Assembly (NCBI RefSeq): GCF_000142905.1
Contig: NW_013657628.1
Coordinates: 179,614 to 243,613 of the forward strand
Source: Thecamonas trahens ATCC 50062
Lineage: Eukaryota; Protista; Apusomonadida
DNA: 64,000 bases
Direction of reading: 5' to 3'
Shown: piece after piece, positions 39,143 to 63,770 of the stretch
Numbering within the stretch: the stretch's first letter is position 1
Layout: each line of letters begins with the position of its first letter
Translations under genes and position numbers: made by a program
Notes under the pieces: model-generated
The model's database searches: none
What the model saw: only the letters and a program-made list of their open reading frames with translations
What the model was told of the DNA's origin: nothing

Positions 39143-39712
39143 GGAGGCACGTCGGTCGGCGTCCGGCAGCTGTTGAGTTGGGCCTAGCTTCCGTCACCCC
39201 CCACAGCTTCGCTCTCCATTCCAGACCTCATCAGGTAGCTTGATCGGCAAGCTCTGAACAGCTTTGATCTGTTGTCGACGTGCAGATGGCTCTGCGTGTG
39301 TGAATCAGTGTCGGAAACCGGCCAGGTGGAGCTTCCGCTGGTGCTGGGTCCGAGTCCGGAGATCGCGTTTCTTGCTGGGGCCACTGGCTCCTCCTGCCGC
39401 ACCACTCCGCACCACTCCGCTCTTACACGTGCTCTGTCGCCTGTGGATGGCAAAGACCAGTACGCATGCCCCCCCCTTCCCCTTCCCTTCCCTTCCCCCA
39501 TCTTCCGCTACCCTTCGCCGTTTCTTCTTCTCTTCCCCCTCCCTCTCTCCCCTTCCTTCCACCTCCTTCTGCCAGCCTTTCTTCCATTCGCACCACCACC
39601 TCACCCACCCGCCCACCCCCTTTCGACCGTAGAACGCGTAGCACTCCCGCACAACAACGAGCGGCCGGTAACACACCCGTCGACACCCTCATCCCCCCCT
39701 TTTTCTCGCGCC

Positions 39713-40963
39713 ATGGCATCTGGATCGTCTGCAGGCTCTGGACCGAAGATCGAGATCCTGCGGATCCCGCCGTTCTCGTACCTGCATGTCACCGACTCGA
39801 ACACCAACGTGACGCGGGTGGTGGAAGGCCCGCAGACCTTTACCTGCATGGACCACGAGGTTGTAGTACTCGGCCCGGTGCCGATGGTAGCGCTTCCACC
39901 GCGGCACTTTTGCATCGTGTCGAATCCGGTTGTCCGCGACGGCGCGAGCGGCGCCGTTGTCTTTGACGGCCACCACCAGGCCAAGCTGCGCCACGGCGAC
40001 CGCGAGGTCCGGCTGGCGCGCGACTACCCGGACCCATTTGCGCTGTATCCGGGCGAGGAGCTGACGCCAAAGACCATGATTCCGCTACAGGTTGTGCCCG
40101 AGAACACGGCCCTGCGCCTGCGGGCCACGCGCGACTTTACGGACCGCCTCACCGAAGACGCGCCCGTCGCGCGCTGCGCCGGCGAGGAGTGGCTCTTCCG
40201 CGGCCATCGGACCTACTATCCGCAAGTTGAAGTGGAGATTCTCGACACGCTCAAGGCTGTTGTCCTCGGGCCCAACCAGGCGCTCCGCCTGCAGGCCCGC
40301 AACTCGACGGTCGACTCTACCGGGACCGCTCGCTCTGCCGGCGAGGAGTGGCTTGTCCTCTCCGAGGGCGCGTACTTGCCGGACGTCGAGGAGATCGTGG
40401 TCGGCGTTGTCGACGCCGTCGTCCTTACCAACACCACCGCCTTGCACCTCCGGGCTGAAAACGACTTTACCGACGTCTACGGTGTCGAGCGCAAGACTGG
40501 CGACGAGTGGCTGGTGACCAAGGCCATGCGCGAGATGCACATTCCGGGCGTTGCCGAGCACGTCGTGAGCGTCGACGACCTCATCACCCTCGCCAACGGT
40601 GAGTACGCTGTCGTCAACGATCCCGTCGATCTCGAGTCTGGCGAGCCCGACATCGGCGCCCAGCGCCTTGTCCTCGGCCCAACCTCGTTCTTCCTCCAGC
40701 CTGGCGAGCGCCTTGATGACGACGTTGGCATCGGAACGGCCTGCGTTCTTGGCGAAGAGGAGGCCCTTCTCCTCACCGCCCGCTTCAACTTTACTGACGA
40801 TGCCGGCGTTGCCCGCCGTGCCGGCGATCGCTGGCTCTGGTATGGCCCGGGCTCGTACGTCCCGCCGCCCGCCGTCCGCATCCTCGCCCGCAAGCGCGCC
40901 CTCGTCCACATCGAGGGCTGGCTCAACGCCTTTTTCTGGCTCACTACCCACTCGTTTGCCTGA
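39713..40963 (+). CDS. Major vault protein-like, N-terminal repeats only (416 aa)
   Basis: RIPPFSYLHVTDSNTNVTRVVEGPQTF, LRHGDREVRL, PFALYPGEEL, repeated ALRLRA..DF...R.AG(E/D)EWL..G.Y.P. Possible upstream mini-exon 39447-39459 (intron 39460-39632, GTACGC...GTAG) joins in frame. Confidence 0.9.
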   Translation: MASGSSAGSGPKIEILRIPPFSYLHVTDSNTNVTRVVEGPQTFTCMDHEVVVLGPVPMVALPPRHFCIVSNPVVRDGASGAVVFDGHHQAKLRHGDREVRLARDYPDPFALYPGEELTPKTMIPLQVVPENTALRLRATRDFTDRLTEDAPVARCAGEEWLFRGHRTYYPQVEVEILDTLKAVVLGPNQALRLQARNSTVDSTGTARSAGEEWLVLSEGAYLPDVEEIVVGVVDAVVLTNTTALHLRAENDFTDVYGVERKTGDEWLVTKAMREMHIPGVAEHVVSVDDLITLANGEYAVVNDPVDLESGEPDIGAQRLVLGPTSFFLQPGERLDDDVGIGTACVLGEEEALLLTARFNFTDDAGVARRAGDRWLWYGPGSYVPPPAVRILARKRALVHIEGWLNAFFWLTTHSFA

Positions 40964-41121
40964 CCGCCCGCCCTCCCGCTCAGCCTCCATCCGGATTGTG
41001 CCGTCGTGCAGGAACTTTCCGAATTGAATTCTACCGCGCCCTGCCCTGACGACTGGGGGGGTACCAGGCTGCCGGGTGAGCCCCCTCCCACCCCACCCCA
41101 CCCCCCATACGCCCTGCAGAC

Positions 41122-44100
41122 ATGTCGTCCGAAGGGTGGACCCGCGTGGGCAAGGGCAAGCGCAGGGCCCGCAACAGAGCCCGCTCGGTCTCGGCCCGCC
41201 TCCCGCCGCACGACGCCTCTGTGCGCGCCAACCCGTACGCCGGCATGCCCGACCCGGACGCTCCACCCGACCCGGCGGCAGCATCCCCGGCGAAGAGCCC
41301 GCCACCCAAGTCGCCGGCTGGCTCGCCGCCAGCCATGCTACGGTCGGCTGCACCTGCACCCACTGCTGTACCCGCCGCCCGCGTCGGCCGCGGCGCGGCT
41401 CCAGAACTCGCGCGCGGCTCAAAGAGCGCCGCCTCCGCCCGGGCGAGCGGGCGGCGGGCGCGCGGGAGCGAAGAAGACAAGGACCACTGGCGGCGGTTCC
41501 AGATGCTAATCGACTCGGTCCACACCTCGATCGACTCGCTGTACCAGCTTTGCGAGGTCCGCGAGTCGGTCGACGAGTGCGAGGAGGTCGCCCGGGTCCT
41601 CGCCAAGTCGTCGGCCGACTTTGACCTCCTTGTTGACCGCATCCGCAAGCAGACTGCGCATCAGAACGAGCCCAAGGCTAAGCCCATCTCGTGGGACGTC
41701 CGTGGTGCATACGTCTCCAAGACTGCACCCATTTCGTGGGCGAACATCGTCCGCAACCCGCTGGCCGCATCCGCCGCCGCCGCCACTGTCGCCGCCGTCG
41801 CCGCGCAGGCGGCTTCCCCGGCTGGCTCCAAGGCCAAAGCCAAGGCCAAGGCTAAAGCCAAGGCCAAGGCCCAGACCAAGGCCAAAGCCCAGGCTGCTGC
41901 TAATGCCAGCTCGCCGCAGCACAGCCCCAACCGGATGCGCTCAGCTCGCCGCACGCTCGATCTCTCGCCGTCGGCCGTCAGCTCTTCGGCCACGGCCGAC
42001 CGCTCCACTTCACCACGCACGGCGAAGGCTCCGTCCGAGCCGCTGCCCGATCTTGAGCTTGAGGCCTCGTCAGAGGTCTCACCCGAGTCTGGCTCGGGCA
42101 AACCAGAGACCTCGCCAGCAGCGGCACCGCTCTCCGGATGGAGCGACGACGACGAGCTGCCGACGGGCGAGTTTGACCCTTTCCAGGAGTTTGCTGCTCG
42201 GTCAGGCAAGCTTGCATGGGCCGACTACACCTCGCCGCAGTCGCCAACCCGTGGACGCAACCTCCACCGCAAGCTCTCGTCGCCCGAGCGCAAGAAGCGC
42301 AACCCGCACGAGGCCGCACGTATTGCGGCCGAGAAGCAGGCACGGGCACAGGAAGCCCGCGAGCGGGTCGAGCAGGAGAAAATCCTTCGGGCGCGATCAC
42401 ACCACAACGAGCGCGTCGCCGCACACCGTGAGCTCGAGCGGCAGCGTGCGCAGGAACGCGCCGCCCGCGCCGACGAAAAGCAGGCCAAGGCTGCGGTCCT
42501 ACGCGAGGAGGCACTTGCCGCCAAAGTCCGCAAGGCTCAGGCCGAAGACGCCAAGGTCCGGGAGAACGCCATTGTGCGCGAGCTCTCCGAGGCTGCGTCG
42601 CGGGCCGAGCTGCAGCGGCGGTTGCTCCGCGACGAGGCCCGGACTGCCGAGCTCCGCGCTAAGAAGGAGGAGAAGACCAAGGCCAAGCGCGCCAAGGACG
42701 CGGCCAAGAAGCGGATCGTTGGCGCGGCTGGGCCGGGTACGGCCCCGCTCAAGCCCAAGATCTGCCGAGTCTGTGTCAGTGACCTGCCAACACCAACCAA
42801 GGCCTCCATCGCCAAACATCTCAAGTCGCAGGCCCACGTCGTTGCCGCCGCCCGCCTTGCGCTCACCGACGGAGACATGATCAACTCGCCTGTCGTCGAC
42901 GCCCGCACCGCCCTGCTCTCACTCACGGCTGCCGAGCGCGAGGCCCGCGCCGCCCGCGCTCAGGCTGGGCGCAAAAAGGGCAAGAAGCTCCGCGCCGCTG
43001 CCGCCGCCATACGACTCTCGCCGCACGGGCTTGAGGCTGTCATCGCCGCCGCCTGCCGTGCCGAGTTTGGTGCCATGCCACCGGCGCCAAAGAAGACCTC
43101 CCTCACCCCGCTCGCCAGTGCGTTGCGCGAGTTTGTAGCTGCTGCCGAGCGCGGGCGCGCCCTCACCGCGCTCGACGTTCAGAGCGGCTTCCATGCCGTC
43201 CGCCGCGTTGCGGCGCTGTACTCACTACCGTCGGTGCGCGGCTCGACGTCAGGCGTTCACTTTGAGGCCTGGTCGCGGCTGGTCACCTCGGACGGTGTCA
43301 TTTTTGCGCTCCTCGACATCATTGCCCTCAGCAATGTTCCGCCCTCAATCTTGGGTCTTTCCTCGGTCGTGCTCCTCGAGGCTATTCGGGCCTCTCGCCA
43401 CGTCAGGCTTGCCATTCTGGCGTCAGGCAAGGCGTCGGCACTCGTCCGTGCTACCATCACGCTTGTCTCCAAGACGCTGGTGCCGAGCGAGCTCGAGACC
43501 GCAGCCTCCCTCGTGTGCGCGTTCACCATCCTCTGCTCGGCGCGCGACAGCGCTCCTGAGCTCAGCGACGCTGCGTCTGCCGAACTTGCGGGCAAGCTCG
43601 ATCCCGACGACGCGGCAGGCTTTGCAGAGCTCGAACCGCGGATCCGGCGGCTTCGCACCAACCTCCTCAAACAGGCGGTCCACATGCAGGCTGTTGAGGC
43701 CGTCGTCGACTGTATGATGACGTACGGCGAGCTGACGTTTAGCTCGCCGCCCTCGCCCACCACCGCCTTTGTCATTCGCGCGCTGCAGATGCTCAACTCT
43801 CTCGCCGGCGCGGCGCGCGACACGGCCGACGACGACGGCTCATCCGGCTCGACTGTCGTCCGGTCGCTCCTCCTCACTGCGTTCCAGCAGGCTTCAGTCC
43901 CAGCGCACATGGTCACGTTTCTCAACTCGATCCTCCTCCGCGCTGGCCCTCTCGAAACCGCCGACTCCGTGCCGGCGCTGTCGCCGGCGACACTCACCGT
44001 CTTTGAGCTCGCGCTCCGCCTCATGAACACGGTTGCGGCGTCGGACGCGGTCCTCGTCCAGACCGCGCTCACCGAAGAGTCGCTGCTCTCGCGACAGGAG

Positions 44101-44589
44101 GCCGTCCACATGTTCACCAACCTCTTTGTCTTTTGCACATCGGCTGGCTCGTCGGCAGAGATGCTCCTTGCCGAGCTCCTCCTGCTCATCGGCTACTACG
44201 CGGCGTTCAATTCTGATGCACAGGAGGCGCTCGCCACCGGCCGCCGCCCCACCTTGCTTCAACGCATGACCACGTTGCCGTTCAAGTACTTTTCGTCCCC
44301 GGCGCTCCGTCCCATCCTCCTGCCCTCACTCGTTGCCGCCGTCCACAATGCCCCGCTCTCGCTCTCGCTCCTCAAGGAAGAGGTCTCACCAACGCTACTT
44401 GTCCGCTTCCTCGTCGAGCTCCGCGACGGCTCATTCCCTGCCGACGCCAAAGAGTGGCGGTACAACCCGCTCGCTCGGTTCCCAGAGTCAGAGATCGAGC
44501 GCGCCATCACGTTTCTCGACCCCGAAACTGCCTCCTCGTCGTCAGCGTCGGCATCGGCGCCGGCGCCGGCGCCGTCGTCGTCAGAGTAG
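41122..44589 (+). CDS. SCAPER: SCAPER-like protein (S-phase cyclin A-associated protein in the ER)
   Basis: N-domain SIDSLYQLCE..SVDECEEV..DF, ISWDVR; LHRKLSSPERK; coiled coil; C2H2 finger CRVC...HLKSQAH; C-terminal G..PTLLQRM..LPFKYFS..L.PSL. Confidence 0.85.
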   Translation: MSSEGWTRVGKGKRRARNRARSVSARLPPHDASVRANPYAGMPDPDAPPDPAAASPAKSPPPKSPAGSPPAMLRSAAPAPTAVPAARVGRGAAPELARGSKSAASARASGRRARGSEEDKDHWRRFQMLIDSVHTSIDSLYQLCEVRESVDECEEVARVLAKSSADFDLLVDRIRKQTAHQNEPKAKPISWDVRGAYVSKTAPISWANIVRNPLAASAAAATVAAVAAQAASPAGSKAKAKAKAKAKAKAQTKAKAQAAANASSPQHSPNRMRSARRTLDLSPSAVSSSATADRSTSPRTAKAPSEPLPDLELEASSEVSPESGSGKPETSPAAAPLSGWSDDDELPTGEFDPFQEFAARSGKLAWADYTSPQSPTRGRNLHRKLSSPERKKRNPHEAARIAAEKQARAQEARERVEQEKILRARSHHNERVAAHRELERQRAQERAARADEKQAKAAVLREEALAAKVRKAQAEDAKVRENAIVRELSEAASRAELQRRLLRDEARTAELRAKKEEKTKAKRAKDAAKKRIVGAAGPGTAPLKPKICRVCVSDLPTPTKASIAKHLKSQAHVVAAARLALTDGDMINSPVVDARTALLSLTAAEREARAARAQAGRKKGKKLRAAAAAIRLSPHGLEAVIAAACRAEFGAMPPAPKKTSLTPLASALREFVAAAERGRALTALDVQSGFHAVRRVAALYSLPSVRGSTSGVHFEAWSRLVTSDGVIFALLDIIALSNVPPSILGLSSVVLLEAIRASRHVRLAILASGKASALVRATITLVSKTLVPSELETAASLVCAFTILCSARDSAPELSDAASAELAGKLDPDDAAGFAELEPRIRRLRTNLLKQAVHMQAVEAVVDCMMTYGELTFSSPPSPTTAFVIRALQMLNSLAGAARDTADDDGSSGSTVVRSLLLTAFQQASVPAHMVTFLNSILLRAGPLETADSVPALSPATLTVFELALRLMNTVAASDAVLVQTALTEESLLSRQEAVHMFTNLFVFCTSAGSSAEMLLAELLLLIGYYAAFNSDAQEALATGRRPTLLQRMTTLPFKYFSSPALRPILLPSLVAAVHNAPLSLSLLKEEVSPTLLVRFLVELRDGSFPADAKEWRYNPLARFPESEIERAITFLDPETASSSSASASAPAPAPSSSE

Positions 44590-60003: not shown

Positions 60004-63000
60004 ATGTCTCAGCTCCCGCGCCAACCCACACCAGGACCTGCCGGTTCCTGCACCGTCATTGCCACAGGCTCCCGCTATGAAGTGCAATCGTTCTTTGGCT
60101 GCCGCACATGCGGCCTCACCGGTTGCTACGGTACGCCCATCCCCCCCCCCCCCCCCCGGGGTCCCCTTCCCCCCCCTCTTGCCGTGTCGTCCCGCACGTG
60201 TTGCTTTTCATTGCTGTTTCTTTTCGCCTAGGCCCTCCAACTTGTCAGCCACTGCAGGAGCATGTGGACCGTGTCGTTCGACAAACACCCCCAAGGTACC
60301 ATCTCCATGCCTTTAGTCACCATCGGCTACCATTTTGAGTGTCATTGGTGGCGAGAGTCGGTTGTCCATGGCCAGGGCGATGACCGCTCCATCGTCGCTT
60401 TCACGCCCTTTTTCGGCTGGTGTGCTAATTTTTCGCAACCCGTGATCCTTTCCACCTCCTTGACCATGCCCACACCACCACCTCTACCACGGCGTGCAAG
60501 CCAGTCATCGACCGTTTGAGCTTGCGTAGACAGCCGTATGACTCTTGTTGTCACCGCCACCTACTTTCCGCACTCCTCCAGTGACCACCTCCCGCGAAGC
60601 CCTCCCTCCCCCCCTCTCCTGTCGTCCCCCACTAGGGCGACGACACGCTGTTGATCGATCAGGCGCAGGACTCATGCACGTGATGTATTTTCGGATGGTA
60701 TATGTGTGTGTGAACAGGAGCGTGTGCTGCGTGTGCGGAAAAGTGCCACGCCGGGCATGATCTGACCGAGCCGCGCGAGACGCGGTGCTACTGTGACTGC
60801 GGGTGGCGGGCGCAGTACGGCGAGGAGGCGTACACGGGACAGGCGCCGTGCCAGTGCGTGGTGTGGAAGGAGGCGACGTTTGCCGACTATCGCGCCAAGG
60901 CCGAGGAGAAGATTGCCAAGCGGCAGGCAGAGCTCGACGAGCTGCTTGCGGTGGAAGGGGTTGTTGCGAGCACGGTTGCGCTCGAGGTGGACTGGGCCTC
61001 GTTTGAGGGAGCGGCGAACCCGATCAAGACCTGGCCGTACATGACCAACGACTGGTACCTGTACCGGTGGATTGTGTACGCGCTCAAGGAGCTTGTGGAG
61101 CAAAACTCTGACGGGGCGGAGAAGCTGCGGACGCTGTCATCGATCCGGCTTGTGCACGCGAACCCGGGCCTCCCGTCTGAGGAGCGCGTTGTTGTGGTGG
61201 ATGGCGTGGCGACGTTCACGGCGTCGTACTGCTGCTACTGGCACGCGATCGACCGGTCGGACGTGACCGAGGGCCTTGTGGTGGCGCTGGGCATCTGGAG
61301 CGGCTTCCGCGACACGCTGTATGCGGCGGCCGAGGAGGTGTCTGGGCAGATGGGCGGGGTGCCGATGATCACAGACCTTGCGTCGTTTGACTACGAGGGC
61401 GAGGAGCCGCTTGCGTCGCGGCGCAAGGCCAAGGCACTGACGTGCGCGTCGATGTGGCGTGGACAGCGGGCGTGGGGCAAGGTTGCGGACGCGCGGCGGT
61501 GGGCGTCGAACCCGACGGATGAGGAGCTGCAGGCTGCGTTCTCGGGCGGCGTGGTGTACCACAACAAGCACTTTGTGCAGTGGGGCCCGGACGAGAACGG
61601 GTACACGCCGGGCTTCAAGCGGCTGTACACGGTGGACTACGACATTGTCAACAAGATGTTCCACGTGTACGATGTGTGCGAGAAGAACTTTTGGCAGTGC
61701 AACTCGTGGTACGACATTGGGTCGCTGATGTCGCAGGTGCTCTCGCTGTACCGGCTGGGCGAGTTTGAGACGATGAGCGAGGCGCAGCACAAGGCCAAAA
61801 CAGAGCTGTTGGAGGCGGTGTGTACCTCGTCCAAGGTGCGGTACGAGGGCGACTTTACCTGGCTCCGGCAGATTCTGGCGTACCCGTGCTTCTACCCCAA
61901 GGACAATCACGACCGGCGTGCGACGGCCATCCAGATGGCGCACATCAACTCTGCGGCGTACCGGGAAAAGATTCCGGAGGACACGCGGCTTGTGGAGGAG
62001 CGGCGGCTGCAGGCCAAGGGGCGCGATCCTGCGAGCCCCGAGGTGTGTGTGGCGTCGTTCCTTGTGGTCAAGGTCTCGTTCCGCGGGATGAAGCAGGAGC
62101 GGCTGATTATGGTGACGGATCGGGCAACGTACTCTGTGGTGCCGCGGTTCAAGGGCTCGCCGTTCAAGTCGAAGATGCACCGGATCTCGCATGCGTACTA
62201 CGGGACGCAGCACATTGGCAAGGCCGACTGGCACACGATGGGCGCGCCGCCGATGCCGTCGCCGCCCAAGGTGGTGACCAAGGCCAAGTCGATGGCGGCG
62301 TCTGCGGGCGGGGCGGTTGGCTCTGCGGGCGGGGCTATTGTGTCTGCGGCGCGGTCGCTTGTGGAGGACTCCCCATCTGGTGGCGAGGCCGGGATGGCGT
62401 CTGGCCCGTTCAAGGGGCCGATCTGCGCGCTGCGGTATGCGTCGACGCGGCTGGCTTCGGACGAGAAGCCGCCGCGCAAGTTCAAGTTTCCGGAGATTCC
62501 GGACCTCAAGGGCAAGATGCTCTCTGTCCTGAGGTCGATCATCGACGCGATCAAGAGCCTCTCGCTGCCGTCGATTCCCAAGCCGCCGATGCCGTCGCTC
62601 AAGATCCCGAACTTGCTGGACATGCTGCGCAAATGCAAGCCGTCGATGCCGTCGATGCCGTCGCTCTCGGAAGGAGCTGGAGCGAGCACGATGACGGCGA
62701 GCGAGGCTGCGGCCGAGACGGACGCCGGCGACTCGTCGCAGTACTCGTGCGCCACGGGCGTGTCATCTGCGGCGCAGGACTCGATTCCGGACATTGCGGA
62801 TGGGCTCGGCGACAAGGAGCTGCCCGAGGTCGAGTTTGAGTGGCCGGACCTCAACCCTGTGCACATGCTGGAGAAGATTGCGGAGAAGATCGAGGCGTGC
62901 GCCGAGTTTGTGATGGAAATGCCGTCCAAGCTAGGCGTTGTGGGCGTTCTCCACGCCTTTGCCAAGTCTGCGGCCAAGGCGTCGGGCCTGGGCGCGATCT

Positions 63001-63770
63001 CGCTGCCCAAGCCGAGCCTCTCTGCGGCGGGCGCTGTGGAGCTCATCCGCAAGACGCTCGATGGGGTGGCGGGCATTCCGGGCCACATCGGGTCGATGCT
63101 CGCCAAGATGGCCGAGGAAGCCAAGTCGTGGTCGCCGGTCTCGATGCCGTCGATGCCGAAGCTCGGCGTCGGCGCGCTTATCCGCAAGATCATTGCGCTC
63201 TTTGCCTCGATCGAGCTCCCCTCGATCGACATCAAGTCGCACTTTCCGGGCATCTCGCTGCCCAAGCTCCCGTCTGTGGCTATGCCGTCGATGTCGATGC
63301 CCGGACCGATGAAGAAGATAGGGGCATGGGTGTCGGGCCCGGTCCGGCCGGAGCACGTCGAGTACGTCCTCATTCCGACGCTGCCCAAGCGGTGCTCGGG
63401 CGCGTCGCGGTACGCGTGCTGGGAAATGGCGTGGGTCATTGCCGGCGCCGCGGCGGCCTTTGCCGAGTCGTCGGTCGTCCCGCCATACGAGGCCGACGTT
63501 CACATCACCACCACCATGACCTCGGGCATGTACAACAAGACCCTCCGCTCGCTGCTCCGCGAGGGCAAGGTCTCTAAGCCATCGGGCCAGGGCGACGCAC
63601 TCTCGACGGACGAGGAGTCTGCCATCGAAGGCCCCGAGTCGGCCGCTGTCGCCTACGCCGCGGCCGCCGAGCGTGCCCGCGCCGCCCTCGCCGAGCAGCA
63701 GGCGCTCACCCAGCAGGCCGCCGCCGCCCAAGAGGCAGCTGCCGCCGCTGCTGTCGAGGCCTCGGCCTAA
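60004..63770 (+). CDS. UBR-type zinc-finger protein with PH-like (hSac2/TH1-like) C-terminal region; 2 exons (60004-60130, 60718-63770), about 1059 aa
   Basis: Splicing restores a UBR box: CTVIATGSRYEVQSFFGCRTCGLTGCY|GACAACAEKCHAGHDL...CYCDCG...CQC. Intron 60131-60717 GTACGC...ACAG. PH-like segment VVKVSFRGMKQERLIMVTDRATY. Confidence 0.8.

Follow-up and report, generated by a model that had tools for sequence, protein, structure and literature searches.

Short relatives of the major vault protein

In eukaryotic cells few particles are as large or as well conserved as vaults, whose function is still unknown. The subject here is a gene that encodes a short paralogue of MVP, the major vault protein, found in a 64,000-nucleotide (nt) stretch of the genome of the apusomonad Thecamonas trahens ATCC 50062 (contig NW_013657628.1, positions 179,614 to 243,613 of the forward strand; this whole stretch is called the window below). 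Compared with canonical MVP (rat, human, and murine; PDB 4V60, 9BW5, and 3GF5; Pfam Vault, Vault_2, Vault_3, Vault_4, and MVP_shoulder), its repeats R1 to R7 are ~50% identical and have the same fold, and the conserved N-terminal motif of R1 is also present, but the protein has little of R8 and nothing of R9, and is without the SPFH-like shoulder, cap helix, and cap ring.

Shortened relatives have been listed before. Table S3 of Zavrelova et al. (2025; PMC12547018) includes, without characterization, a column headed “MVPshort (truncated MVP homolog)”, with entries for DDB_G0282033 of Dictyostelium discoideum, which spans TbMVP1 residues 6–414, two Mastigamoeba genes, and diplonemid genes. Full-text literature searches found no description of a transmembrane (TM) or tail-anchored short MVP, and no mention other than this table. 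The product of DDB_G0282033 (Q54T29) and the Acanthamoeba castellanii “major vault protein alpha, putative” (477 amino acids, aa) have R1–R7, the truncation point, and a shortened R8 hairpin as in Thecamonas; proteins of this type then continue into a hydrophobic C-terminal helix of ~20 residues, some ending in -EL or -DL, whereas the Thecamonas protein stops after an aromatic stub. Short MVPs without a TM helix (Pelomyxa schiedti, 458 aa; transcripts from Cavostelium, Filamoeba, Lenisia, Rhodelphis, and Chloroparvula) end 5–25 residues past the hairpin. Several have an aromatic cluster of the F-F-W type in the same position as in Thecamonas, and in many the aromatics are followed by a basic cluster that is missing in Thecamonas.

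The attachment of vaults to membranes has been described in Dictyostelium by cryo-tomography (Geissler et al., 2026; PMC13100048). In that study 1.4% of vaults stood upright on membranes of the endoplasmic reticulum (ER) or nuclear envelope, with ~50 nm of the 75-nm particle visible and the membrane-side cap unresolved; the enclosed membrane patch was thinner, with a thicker ring at the contact, and no membrane-binding motif was known for the vault. Also discussed by these authors are cages of SPFH proteins (flotillin, erlin, prohibitin, stomatin, HflK/C), which are related to the shoulder of MVP, sit on the membrane by means of N-terminal anchors, and fence off patches of it (PMC13100048). 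Short MVPs, in contrast, have no SPFH domain at all, and their anchor, where present, is C-terminal.

The Thecamonas gene is a member of MVPshort, a widespread and barely studied family, and is very probably a real gene under selection. New here are the prediction that a C-terminal membrane anchor is central to the family's architecture, the assignment of the odd Thecamonas tail, from its sequence, to the conserved R8 hairpin of that family, the apparent retention of an anchor-less version under selection in apusomonads, and the presence of the Dictyostelium member in existing vault proximity data.

The Thecamonas gene and its product

The gene is an intact open reading frame (ORF) at 39713–40963 on the forward strand of the window, which begins with ATG and encodes 416 aa before a TGA at 40961–40963. 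The G+C content of the window is 64% and many long spurious ORFs overlap the locus; this one is set apart by homology, not by length alone. It has already been annotated by NCBI, as protein P0001, “major vault protein [Thecamonas trahens ATCC 50062]” (447 aa), which is 100% identical across the entire 416-aa ORF. Its main features are:

39713..40963, forward strand: short MVP paralogue, complete ORF (416 aa plus TGA); from the ORF list, Pfam, and 100% identity to P0001
39746..40900, forward strand: MVP repeats R1–R7, residues 12–396; from Pfam Vault and Vault_2, phmmer matches to PDB MVP chains, and AlphaFold2 (AF2) with Foldseek
40901..40960, forward strand: conserved 20-aa tail, assigned as the short-family version of the first R8 hairpin plus an aromatic stub, with no predicted TM span; from AF2, profile scores, orthologues, and hydropathy

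An initial annotation, made from the letters of the window, had described this ORF as an MVP paralogue of about seven repeats without a cap, unable to form a standard vault. Both parts agree with the domain content. Pfam finds Vault in four stretches (E 8.7e-65), Vault_2 in two (E 4e-27), and a weak Vault_3, and there is no Pfam match to MVP_shoulder (SPFH-like, PF11978) in the 416-aa protein. In a phmmer search against all solved structures, residues 12–397 correspond to MVP residues ~6–384, that is, to R1–R7 (E 2e-107), and the best match is 3GF5, a crystallized murine R1–R7 fragment. The AF2 model has a mean predicted local distance difference test (pLDDT) score of 80.4, mostly 80–95 over R2–R7, with R1 poorly predicted (from a 14-row alignment); its top Foldseek matches are the murine R1–R7 crystals 3GNG and 3GF5 (template modeling scores 0.74–0.82). 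There is no long cap-helix coiled coil and no cap ring, the protein ending 20 residues past R7. Since neither shoulder nor cap helix is encoded, the protein as predicted cannot by itself supply these parts or close a vault, the 78-mer shell.

Full-length MVPs, whose presence elsewhere in the genome had been left as a question, are encoded by three other genes. The 28.7-Mb Thecamonas assembly has exactly three matches to PF11978, on contigs 46, 40, and 9, each within an uninterrupted, intronless full-length MVP ORF of 875 to ~1015 aa, and all Vault-repeat matches genome-wide fall in these three genes or in the short one. The short MVP is 48–50% identical to each of the three over R1–R7. In alignment with them homology stops at the end of R7, where the canonical proteins go on into R8, and a tblastn search of the whole 64-kb window with the three paralogues, in all frames, found nothing left of R8, R9, the shoulder, or the cap helix. 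Likewise, no TM-coding remnant is present 3′ of the short-MVP stop in any frame, as read from the sequence and the ORF list. The R1 residues which presumably make the waist contacts vary among the three full-length Thecamonas paralogues, and no conclusion is drawn from them. The full-length MVP of contig 9 (L014:1899-4946, forward strand) has an N-terminal extension of ~170 aa with a Cys/His-rich motif resembling a UBR box.

Orthologues and the C-terminal tail

Similarly truncated homologues exist. P0002 (422 aa, 76% identity) is encoded on a marine-metagenome contig of 4.1 kb, and again on a contig from a different sample, and P0003 (407 aa, 66% identity) comes from a EukProt transcriptome, where it is marked as a complete ORF. 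Both terminate within one residue of the Thecamonas stop, and the three proteins have in common the tail pattern A-L-x-H-[IV]-E-G-W-[LM]-N-x-F-[FY]-[WF]-[LI]-T. A codon alignment of the Thecamonas and P0002 genes over 413 codons gives a nonsynonymous rate (dN) of 0.16 and a synonymous rate (dS) of ~1.1, with a dN/dS of 0.14–0.15. No frameshifts are present in the short MVP, despite ~50% divergence from the full-length paralogues. On the P0002 contig a gene of the poly(A)-polymerase family lies upstream and SCAPER is absent downstream, and synteny is uninformative.

The last 20 residues had at first been taken as sequence diverging from MVP altogether. They appear instead to be a form of the first R8 hairpin. 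In the short family the segment after R7 (consensus K-A-F-I-Q-L-E-P-L-N-L-Y-I-F) is the counterpart of the canonical first hairpin of R8 (consensus K-A-I-P-L-D-E-N-E-G-I-Y-V-R-D), in a version two residues shorter. Position-specific profiles of the 16 residues after R7 were made from 42 helix-bearing short proteins, apusomonads excluded, and from 95 canonical MVPs, and gave these scores:

Thecamonas tail: short-family profile +15.0 bits, canonical R8 profile −31.1 bits
P0002 tail: short-family profile +7.2 bits, canonical R8 profile −29.9 bits
P0003 tail: short-family profile +17.7 bits, canonical R8 profile −27.6 bits

Because of these scores the Thecamonas tail is assigned to the short-family hairpin, in a divergent form, and not to random divergence or an unrelated sequence.

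It was also suggested initially that the protein might be a membrane-tethered vault adaptor. For the family this fits, as most relatives have a predicted C-terminal TM helix; for the Thecamonas protein itself it does not. The best 19-residue Kyte-Doolittle mean in its last 70 residues is 0.66, compared to 2.0–3.1 in helix-bearing members, and AF2 places strands (398–400 and 406–408), not a helix, in the tail. For these two reasons it is predicted to have no membrane-spanning segment: the tail is too short to span a bilayer, and the mark of a tail-anchored protein, a single hydrophobic helix of ~20 residues no more than ~40 residues from the C-terminus with no N-terminal signal, is not found.

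The MVPshort family

Far from being a one-off, as the gene had first seemed, the Thecamonas short MVP belongs to an old and widespread family. When 1.8 billion representatives were searched with a profile, 413 matched at E ≤1e-30, of which the best 150 were examined; the family counts here come from these, as clusters at 50% identity. At least 60 clusters have R1–R7, the short-family hairpin, and a strongly hydrophobic C-terminal stretch. About 20 more end soon after the hairpin without a helix, several with the F-F-W cluster and some with a basic patch. Some 30 other entries apparently without a TM helix are contig-end or frameshifted fragments, and were kept out of the trees described below. 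Many other matches of 400–530 aa share the short-MVP layout. The Thecamonas protein has the defining traits of the group, namely R1–R7 only, with an end within the start of R8 and over the same extent as DDB_G0282033, and a hairpin two residues shorter followed by an aromatic run.

By cluster look-ups, members are found in the Amoebozoa (Dictyostelium discoideum, D. citrinum, D. firmibasis, Heterostelium, Ceratiomyxa, Gocevia, Paramoeba, Flabellula, Cavostelium, Filamoeba, Stygamoeba, Acanthamoeba, Balamuthia, and Pelomyxa), the breviate Lenisia, Rhodelphis, and the green alga Chloroparvula. Cavostelium has both helix-bearing and helix-less forms. The D. discoideum member, Q54T29, has 420 aa with ~19 hydrophobic residues at its C-terminus, and its AF2 model (pLDDT 93.6) is a beta rod followed by a hairpin at 387–396 and a helix at 399–419.

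In most lineages the hairpin would lead directly into a single C-terminal TM helix; the few residues that often come after it end in -EL or -DL in a number of members. Among the 60 helix-bearing representatives a median of nine residues follows the helix core, and 17 end in [DE]L (e.g., -KEL, -QEL, -DEL, -KDL). Typical residue frequencies would give such an end by chance in roughly 1% of proteins. We infer that the helix-bearing members are tail-anchored ER membrane proteins with their repeat rods in the cytosol, from where the helix lies, from the shortness of the luminal stub, and from the -[DE]L termini.

Two unusual layouts were seen in passing. The bdelloid rotifer proteins P0119 and P0120 (Adineta steineri and A. 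ricciae; 530 and 552 aa) have R1–R9, with Vault_3 and Vault_4, no shoulder, and a C-terminus that is strongly hydrophobic; vault repeats with a membrane tail seem to have been invented here separately, at a different boundary. In P0135, a short-family MVP of 696 aa from a metagenome, ~300 residues of unrelated sequence follow the hairpin, with no helix, and it is probably a fused gene call.

Gene status and origin of the short form

Trees were made from the R1–R7 columns, with quick searches and approximately unbiased (AU) tests. With LG+G4 and 125 rows, a quick tree has the trio of apusomonad proteins (support 100) inside a 35-row helix-bearing clade, with a Shimodaira-Hasegawa-like approximate likelihood ratio test (SH-aLRT) value of 93, and does not group it with the Thecamonas full-length genes. 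An AU test of all 65 short-type rows as one clade did not reject it, the constrained tree having a log likelihood (lnL) 118 units above the free one (p-AU 0.98), and a second test of the same 65-row constraint gave +32 (p-AU 0.82). A single old origin of the short forms is thus the best-supported reading, though not a proven one. Against it, a quick site-heterogeneous tree of 79 rows leaves these three outside the main clade of short forms, which has 57 rows (SH-aLRT 95), so that the free trees disagree on its placement, and the deep backbone is weak in both. The scatter of helix-less forms over the trees makes more than one loss of the helix probable.

Other accounts of the short gene fare less well. 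Long ORFs arise easily in DNA of 64% G+C, as the spurious ones overlapping this locus show, and the gene might on that ground be taken for a pseudogene, the dead remnant of a partial duplication; the initial annotation had argued against decay from the intact frame. Purifying selection over 413 codons at a dS of ~1.1, the lack of frameshifts, and the retention of both stop position and tail in two other organisms, in one of them as a transcript, speak strongly for the same conclusion, and the pseudogene reading was rejected on its dN/dS and the conserved ends; it would be a great surprise if it were correct. An assembly or gene-model artefact, with the true gene continuing into shoulder and cap exons elsewhere, has nothing in its favor besides the unusual length, and is every bit as improbable: no homology from R8 to the cap is found in the window, all three genomic MVP_shoulder matches lie inside intact full-length ORFs, and independent assemblies show the same end. 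The early claim that no downstream exon supplies the rest is upheld in particular by the metagenomic and transcript-derived orthologues, which stop at the same codon position. Because these orthologues share its end and tail, and because dN/dS is low, pseudogene and misassembly can both be set aside, and so can a downstream exon that was missed. The apusomonad gene could also be real and yet have lost its C-terminal half separately, with only a convergent likeness to the amoebozoan short MVPs. The site-heterogeneous tree can be read in this way, and the bdelloid proteins are an instance of TM-tailed truncated MVPs that arose separately. An independent truncation would need, on the other hand, to have cut at the same point and shortened the hairpin by two residues in the same way, and to have produced tails scoring +7 to +18 bits on an apusomonad-free profile and about −30 on the canonical one, and constrained monophyly is better in likelihood than the free trees. 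It is considered quite improbable.

A possible link to vaults and membranes

The reading preferred here, which joins gene, family, and vault docking and is judged probable as a whole, is that of a functional MVPshort-family gene for an R1–R7 rod with the first R8 hairpin and an aromatic tail. MVPshort would be a side branch that left the MVP lineage long ago, and its product a rigid all-beta rod capped by the hairpin. Thecamonas and its two closest relatives would have lost the helix, with the hairpin and the F-F-W-type stub kept under purifying selection. To dock onto barrels of full-length MVP, or to become part of them, the rod may use the same surfaces as canonical MVP, namely the tip of R1 and the lateral faces of the repeats. 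In helix-bearing relatives such docking would fasten vaults to the ER or the nuclear envelope. In Thecamonas the aromatic stub might give only peripheral membrane binding or partner binding, or alternatively the protein could be a soluble competitor for R1 or lateral contacts. Taken singly, the idea that MVPshort acts on vault particles at all is a serious possibility that falls somewhat short of even.

A more specific version is attractive and, for the present, unlikely. In this version MVPshort would be the missing membrane anchor of the vault: tail-anchored R1–R7 rings in the ER or nuclear-envelope membrane would each dock one canonical half-vault by their R1 tips. The upright Dictyostelium particles, ~50 nm tall, capless on one side, and enclosing a thinned patch of membrane, would be the outcome, and TM-less forms such as that of Thecamonas, whether soluble or peripheral, would compete with this docking or regulate it. 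Going by the geometry of the rat vault, a half-vault plus an R1–R7 ring should stand roughly 47–53 nm tall. This is near the reported 50 nm, although the published average of 14 particles cannot discriminate.

The isolated murine R1–R7 fragment is soluble and is not known to form rings, which counts against the preferred reading, as does the lack of a TM span in the Thecamonas protein, whose own membrane association is a conjecture. Further evidence comes from proximity labeling in Dictyostelium. In the source table of Fig. 5D (MVPA-TurboID) of PMC13100048, Q54T29 is flagged as significant with six unique peptides, a log2 fold change of +1.09, and q of 4.7e-7, compared to +7.49 for MVPB; the main text names only MVPA and MVPB, not Q54T29. 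The support for a vault link is indirect and weak, as the enrichment is only twofold, 529 proteins were enriched in the same experiment (PMC13100048), and the ligase is located at the cap end of MVPA, a long way from the position of a docked R1–R7 ring.

The R1–R7 rod could also have a role apart from vaults, as a decoy or scaffold for proteins that bind vault repeats or, in the relatives, as a spacer on the ER surface. In its favor, the protein has none of the elements known to drive shell assembly, the short forms are very diverse, and the Dictyostelium homologue is enriched no more than twofold near MVPA. That canonical MVP co-occurs in every named short-form species checked (Thecamonas, Dictyostelium, and Mastigamoeba), and that the N-terminal motif of R1 is highly conserved across the short family, both argue for a connection to the vault, and a vault-independent role is thought rather unlikely.

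Gene model and neighboring sequences

Several further features lie around the ORF:

39447..39459, forward strand: upstream mini-exon (MAKT...) of the public gene model, 13 nt; from the sequence against P0001, by eye
39460..39632, forward strand: GT...AG intron of the public gene model, containing a long C/T-rich tract; from the sequence
40964..41121, no strand: spacer of 158 nt from the short-MVP stop to the next ORF; no MVP similarity in any frame
41122..44589, forward strand: SCAPER-like neighboring gene; from Pfam SCAPER_N, E 1.7e-13

The extra 31 N-terminal residues of P0001 are accounted for by the mini-exon at 39447–39459 and the region after the intron at 39460–39632, with translation from 39635 giving P0001 from residue 6 onward; the exons of this two-exon model were compared with P0001 separately, by eye. 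The two closest orthologues begin near the ATG at 39713, so that the extra N-terminus in the public model is best considered optional. The C/T-rich tract within the annotated 5′ intron, just 5′ of the short-MVP ORF, is ~150 nt long (39470–39620, forward strand), and a similar C-rich run at ~41080–41118 precedes the SCAPER-like ORF, whose start at 41122 agrees with the initial placement of SCAPER 158 nt downstream.

Elsewhere in the window, 60696–61007 (forward strand) is a tblastn match (E 6e-9) to residues 10–112, in the N-terminal extension, of the MVP on contig 9. As given, it is interrupted by a stop, and it overlaps the start of a 970-aa ORF at 60858–63770; this locus is possibly another UBR-type zinc-finger gene.

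Implications

The MVPshort family is a candidate for the unexplained attachment of vaults to the ER. It supplies a candidate motif, a vault-repeat rod with a predicted tail anchor in most species and an ER-retrieval-like C-terminus in some, and the open question of how vaults meet membranes becomes approachable by genetics in Dictyostelium, an established model organism. The Thecamonas gene would be a natural anchor-less variant with the rest of the protein under selection, and as such may be useful for separating a membrane-binding role from a repeat-binding one.
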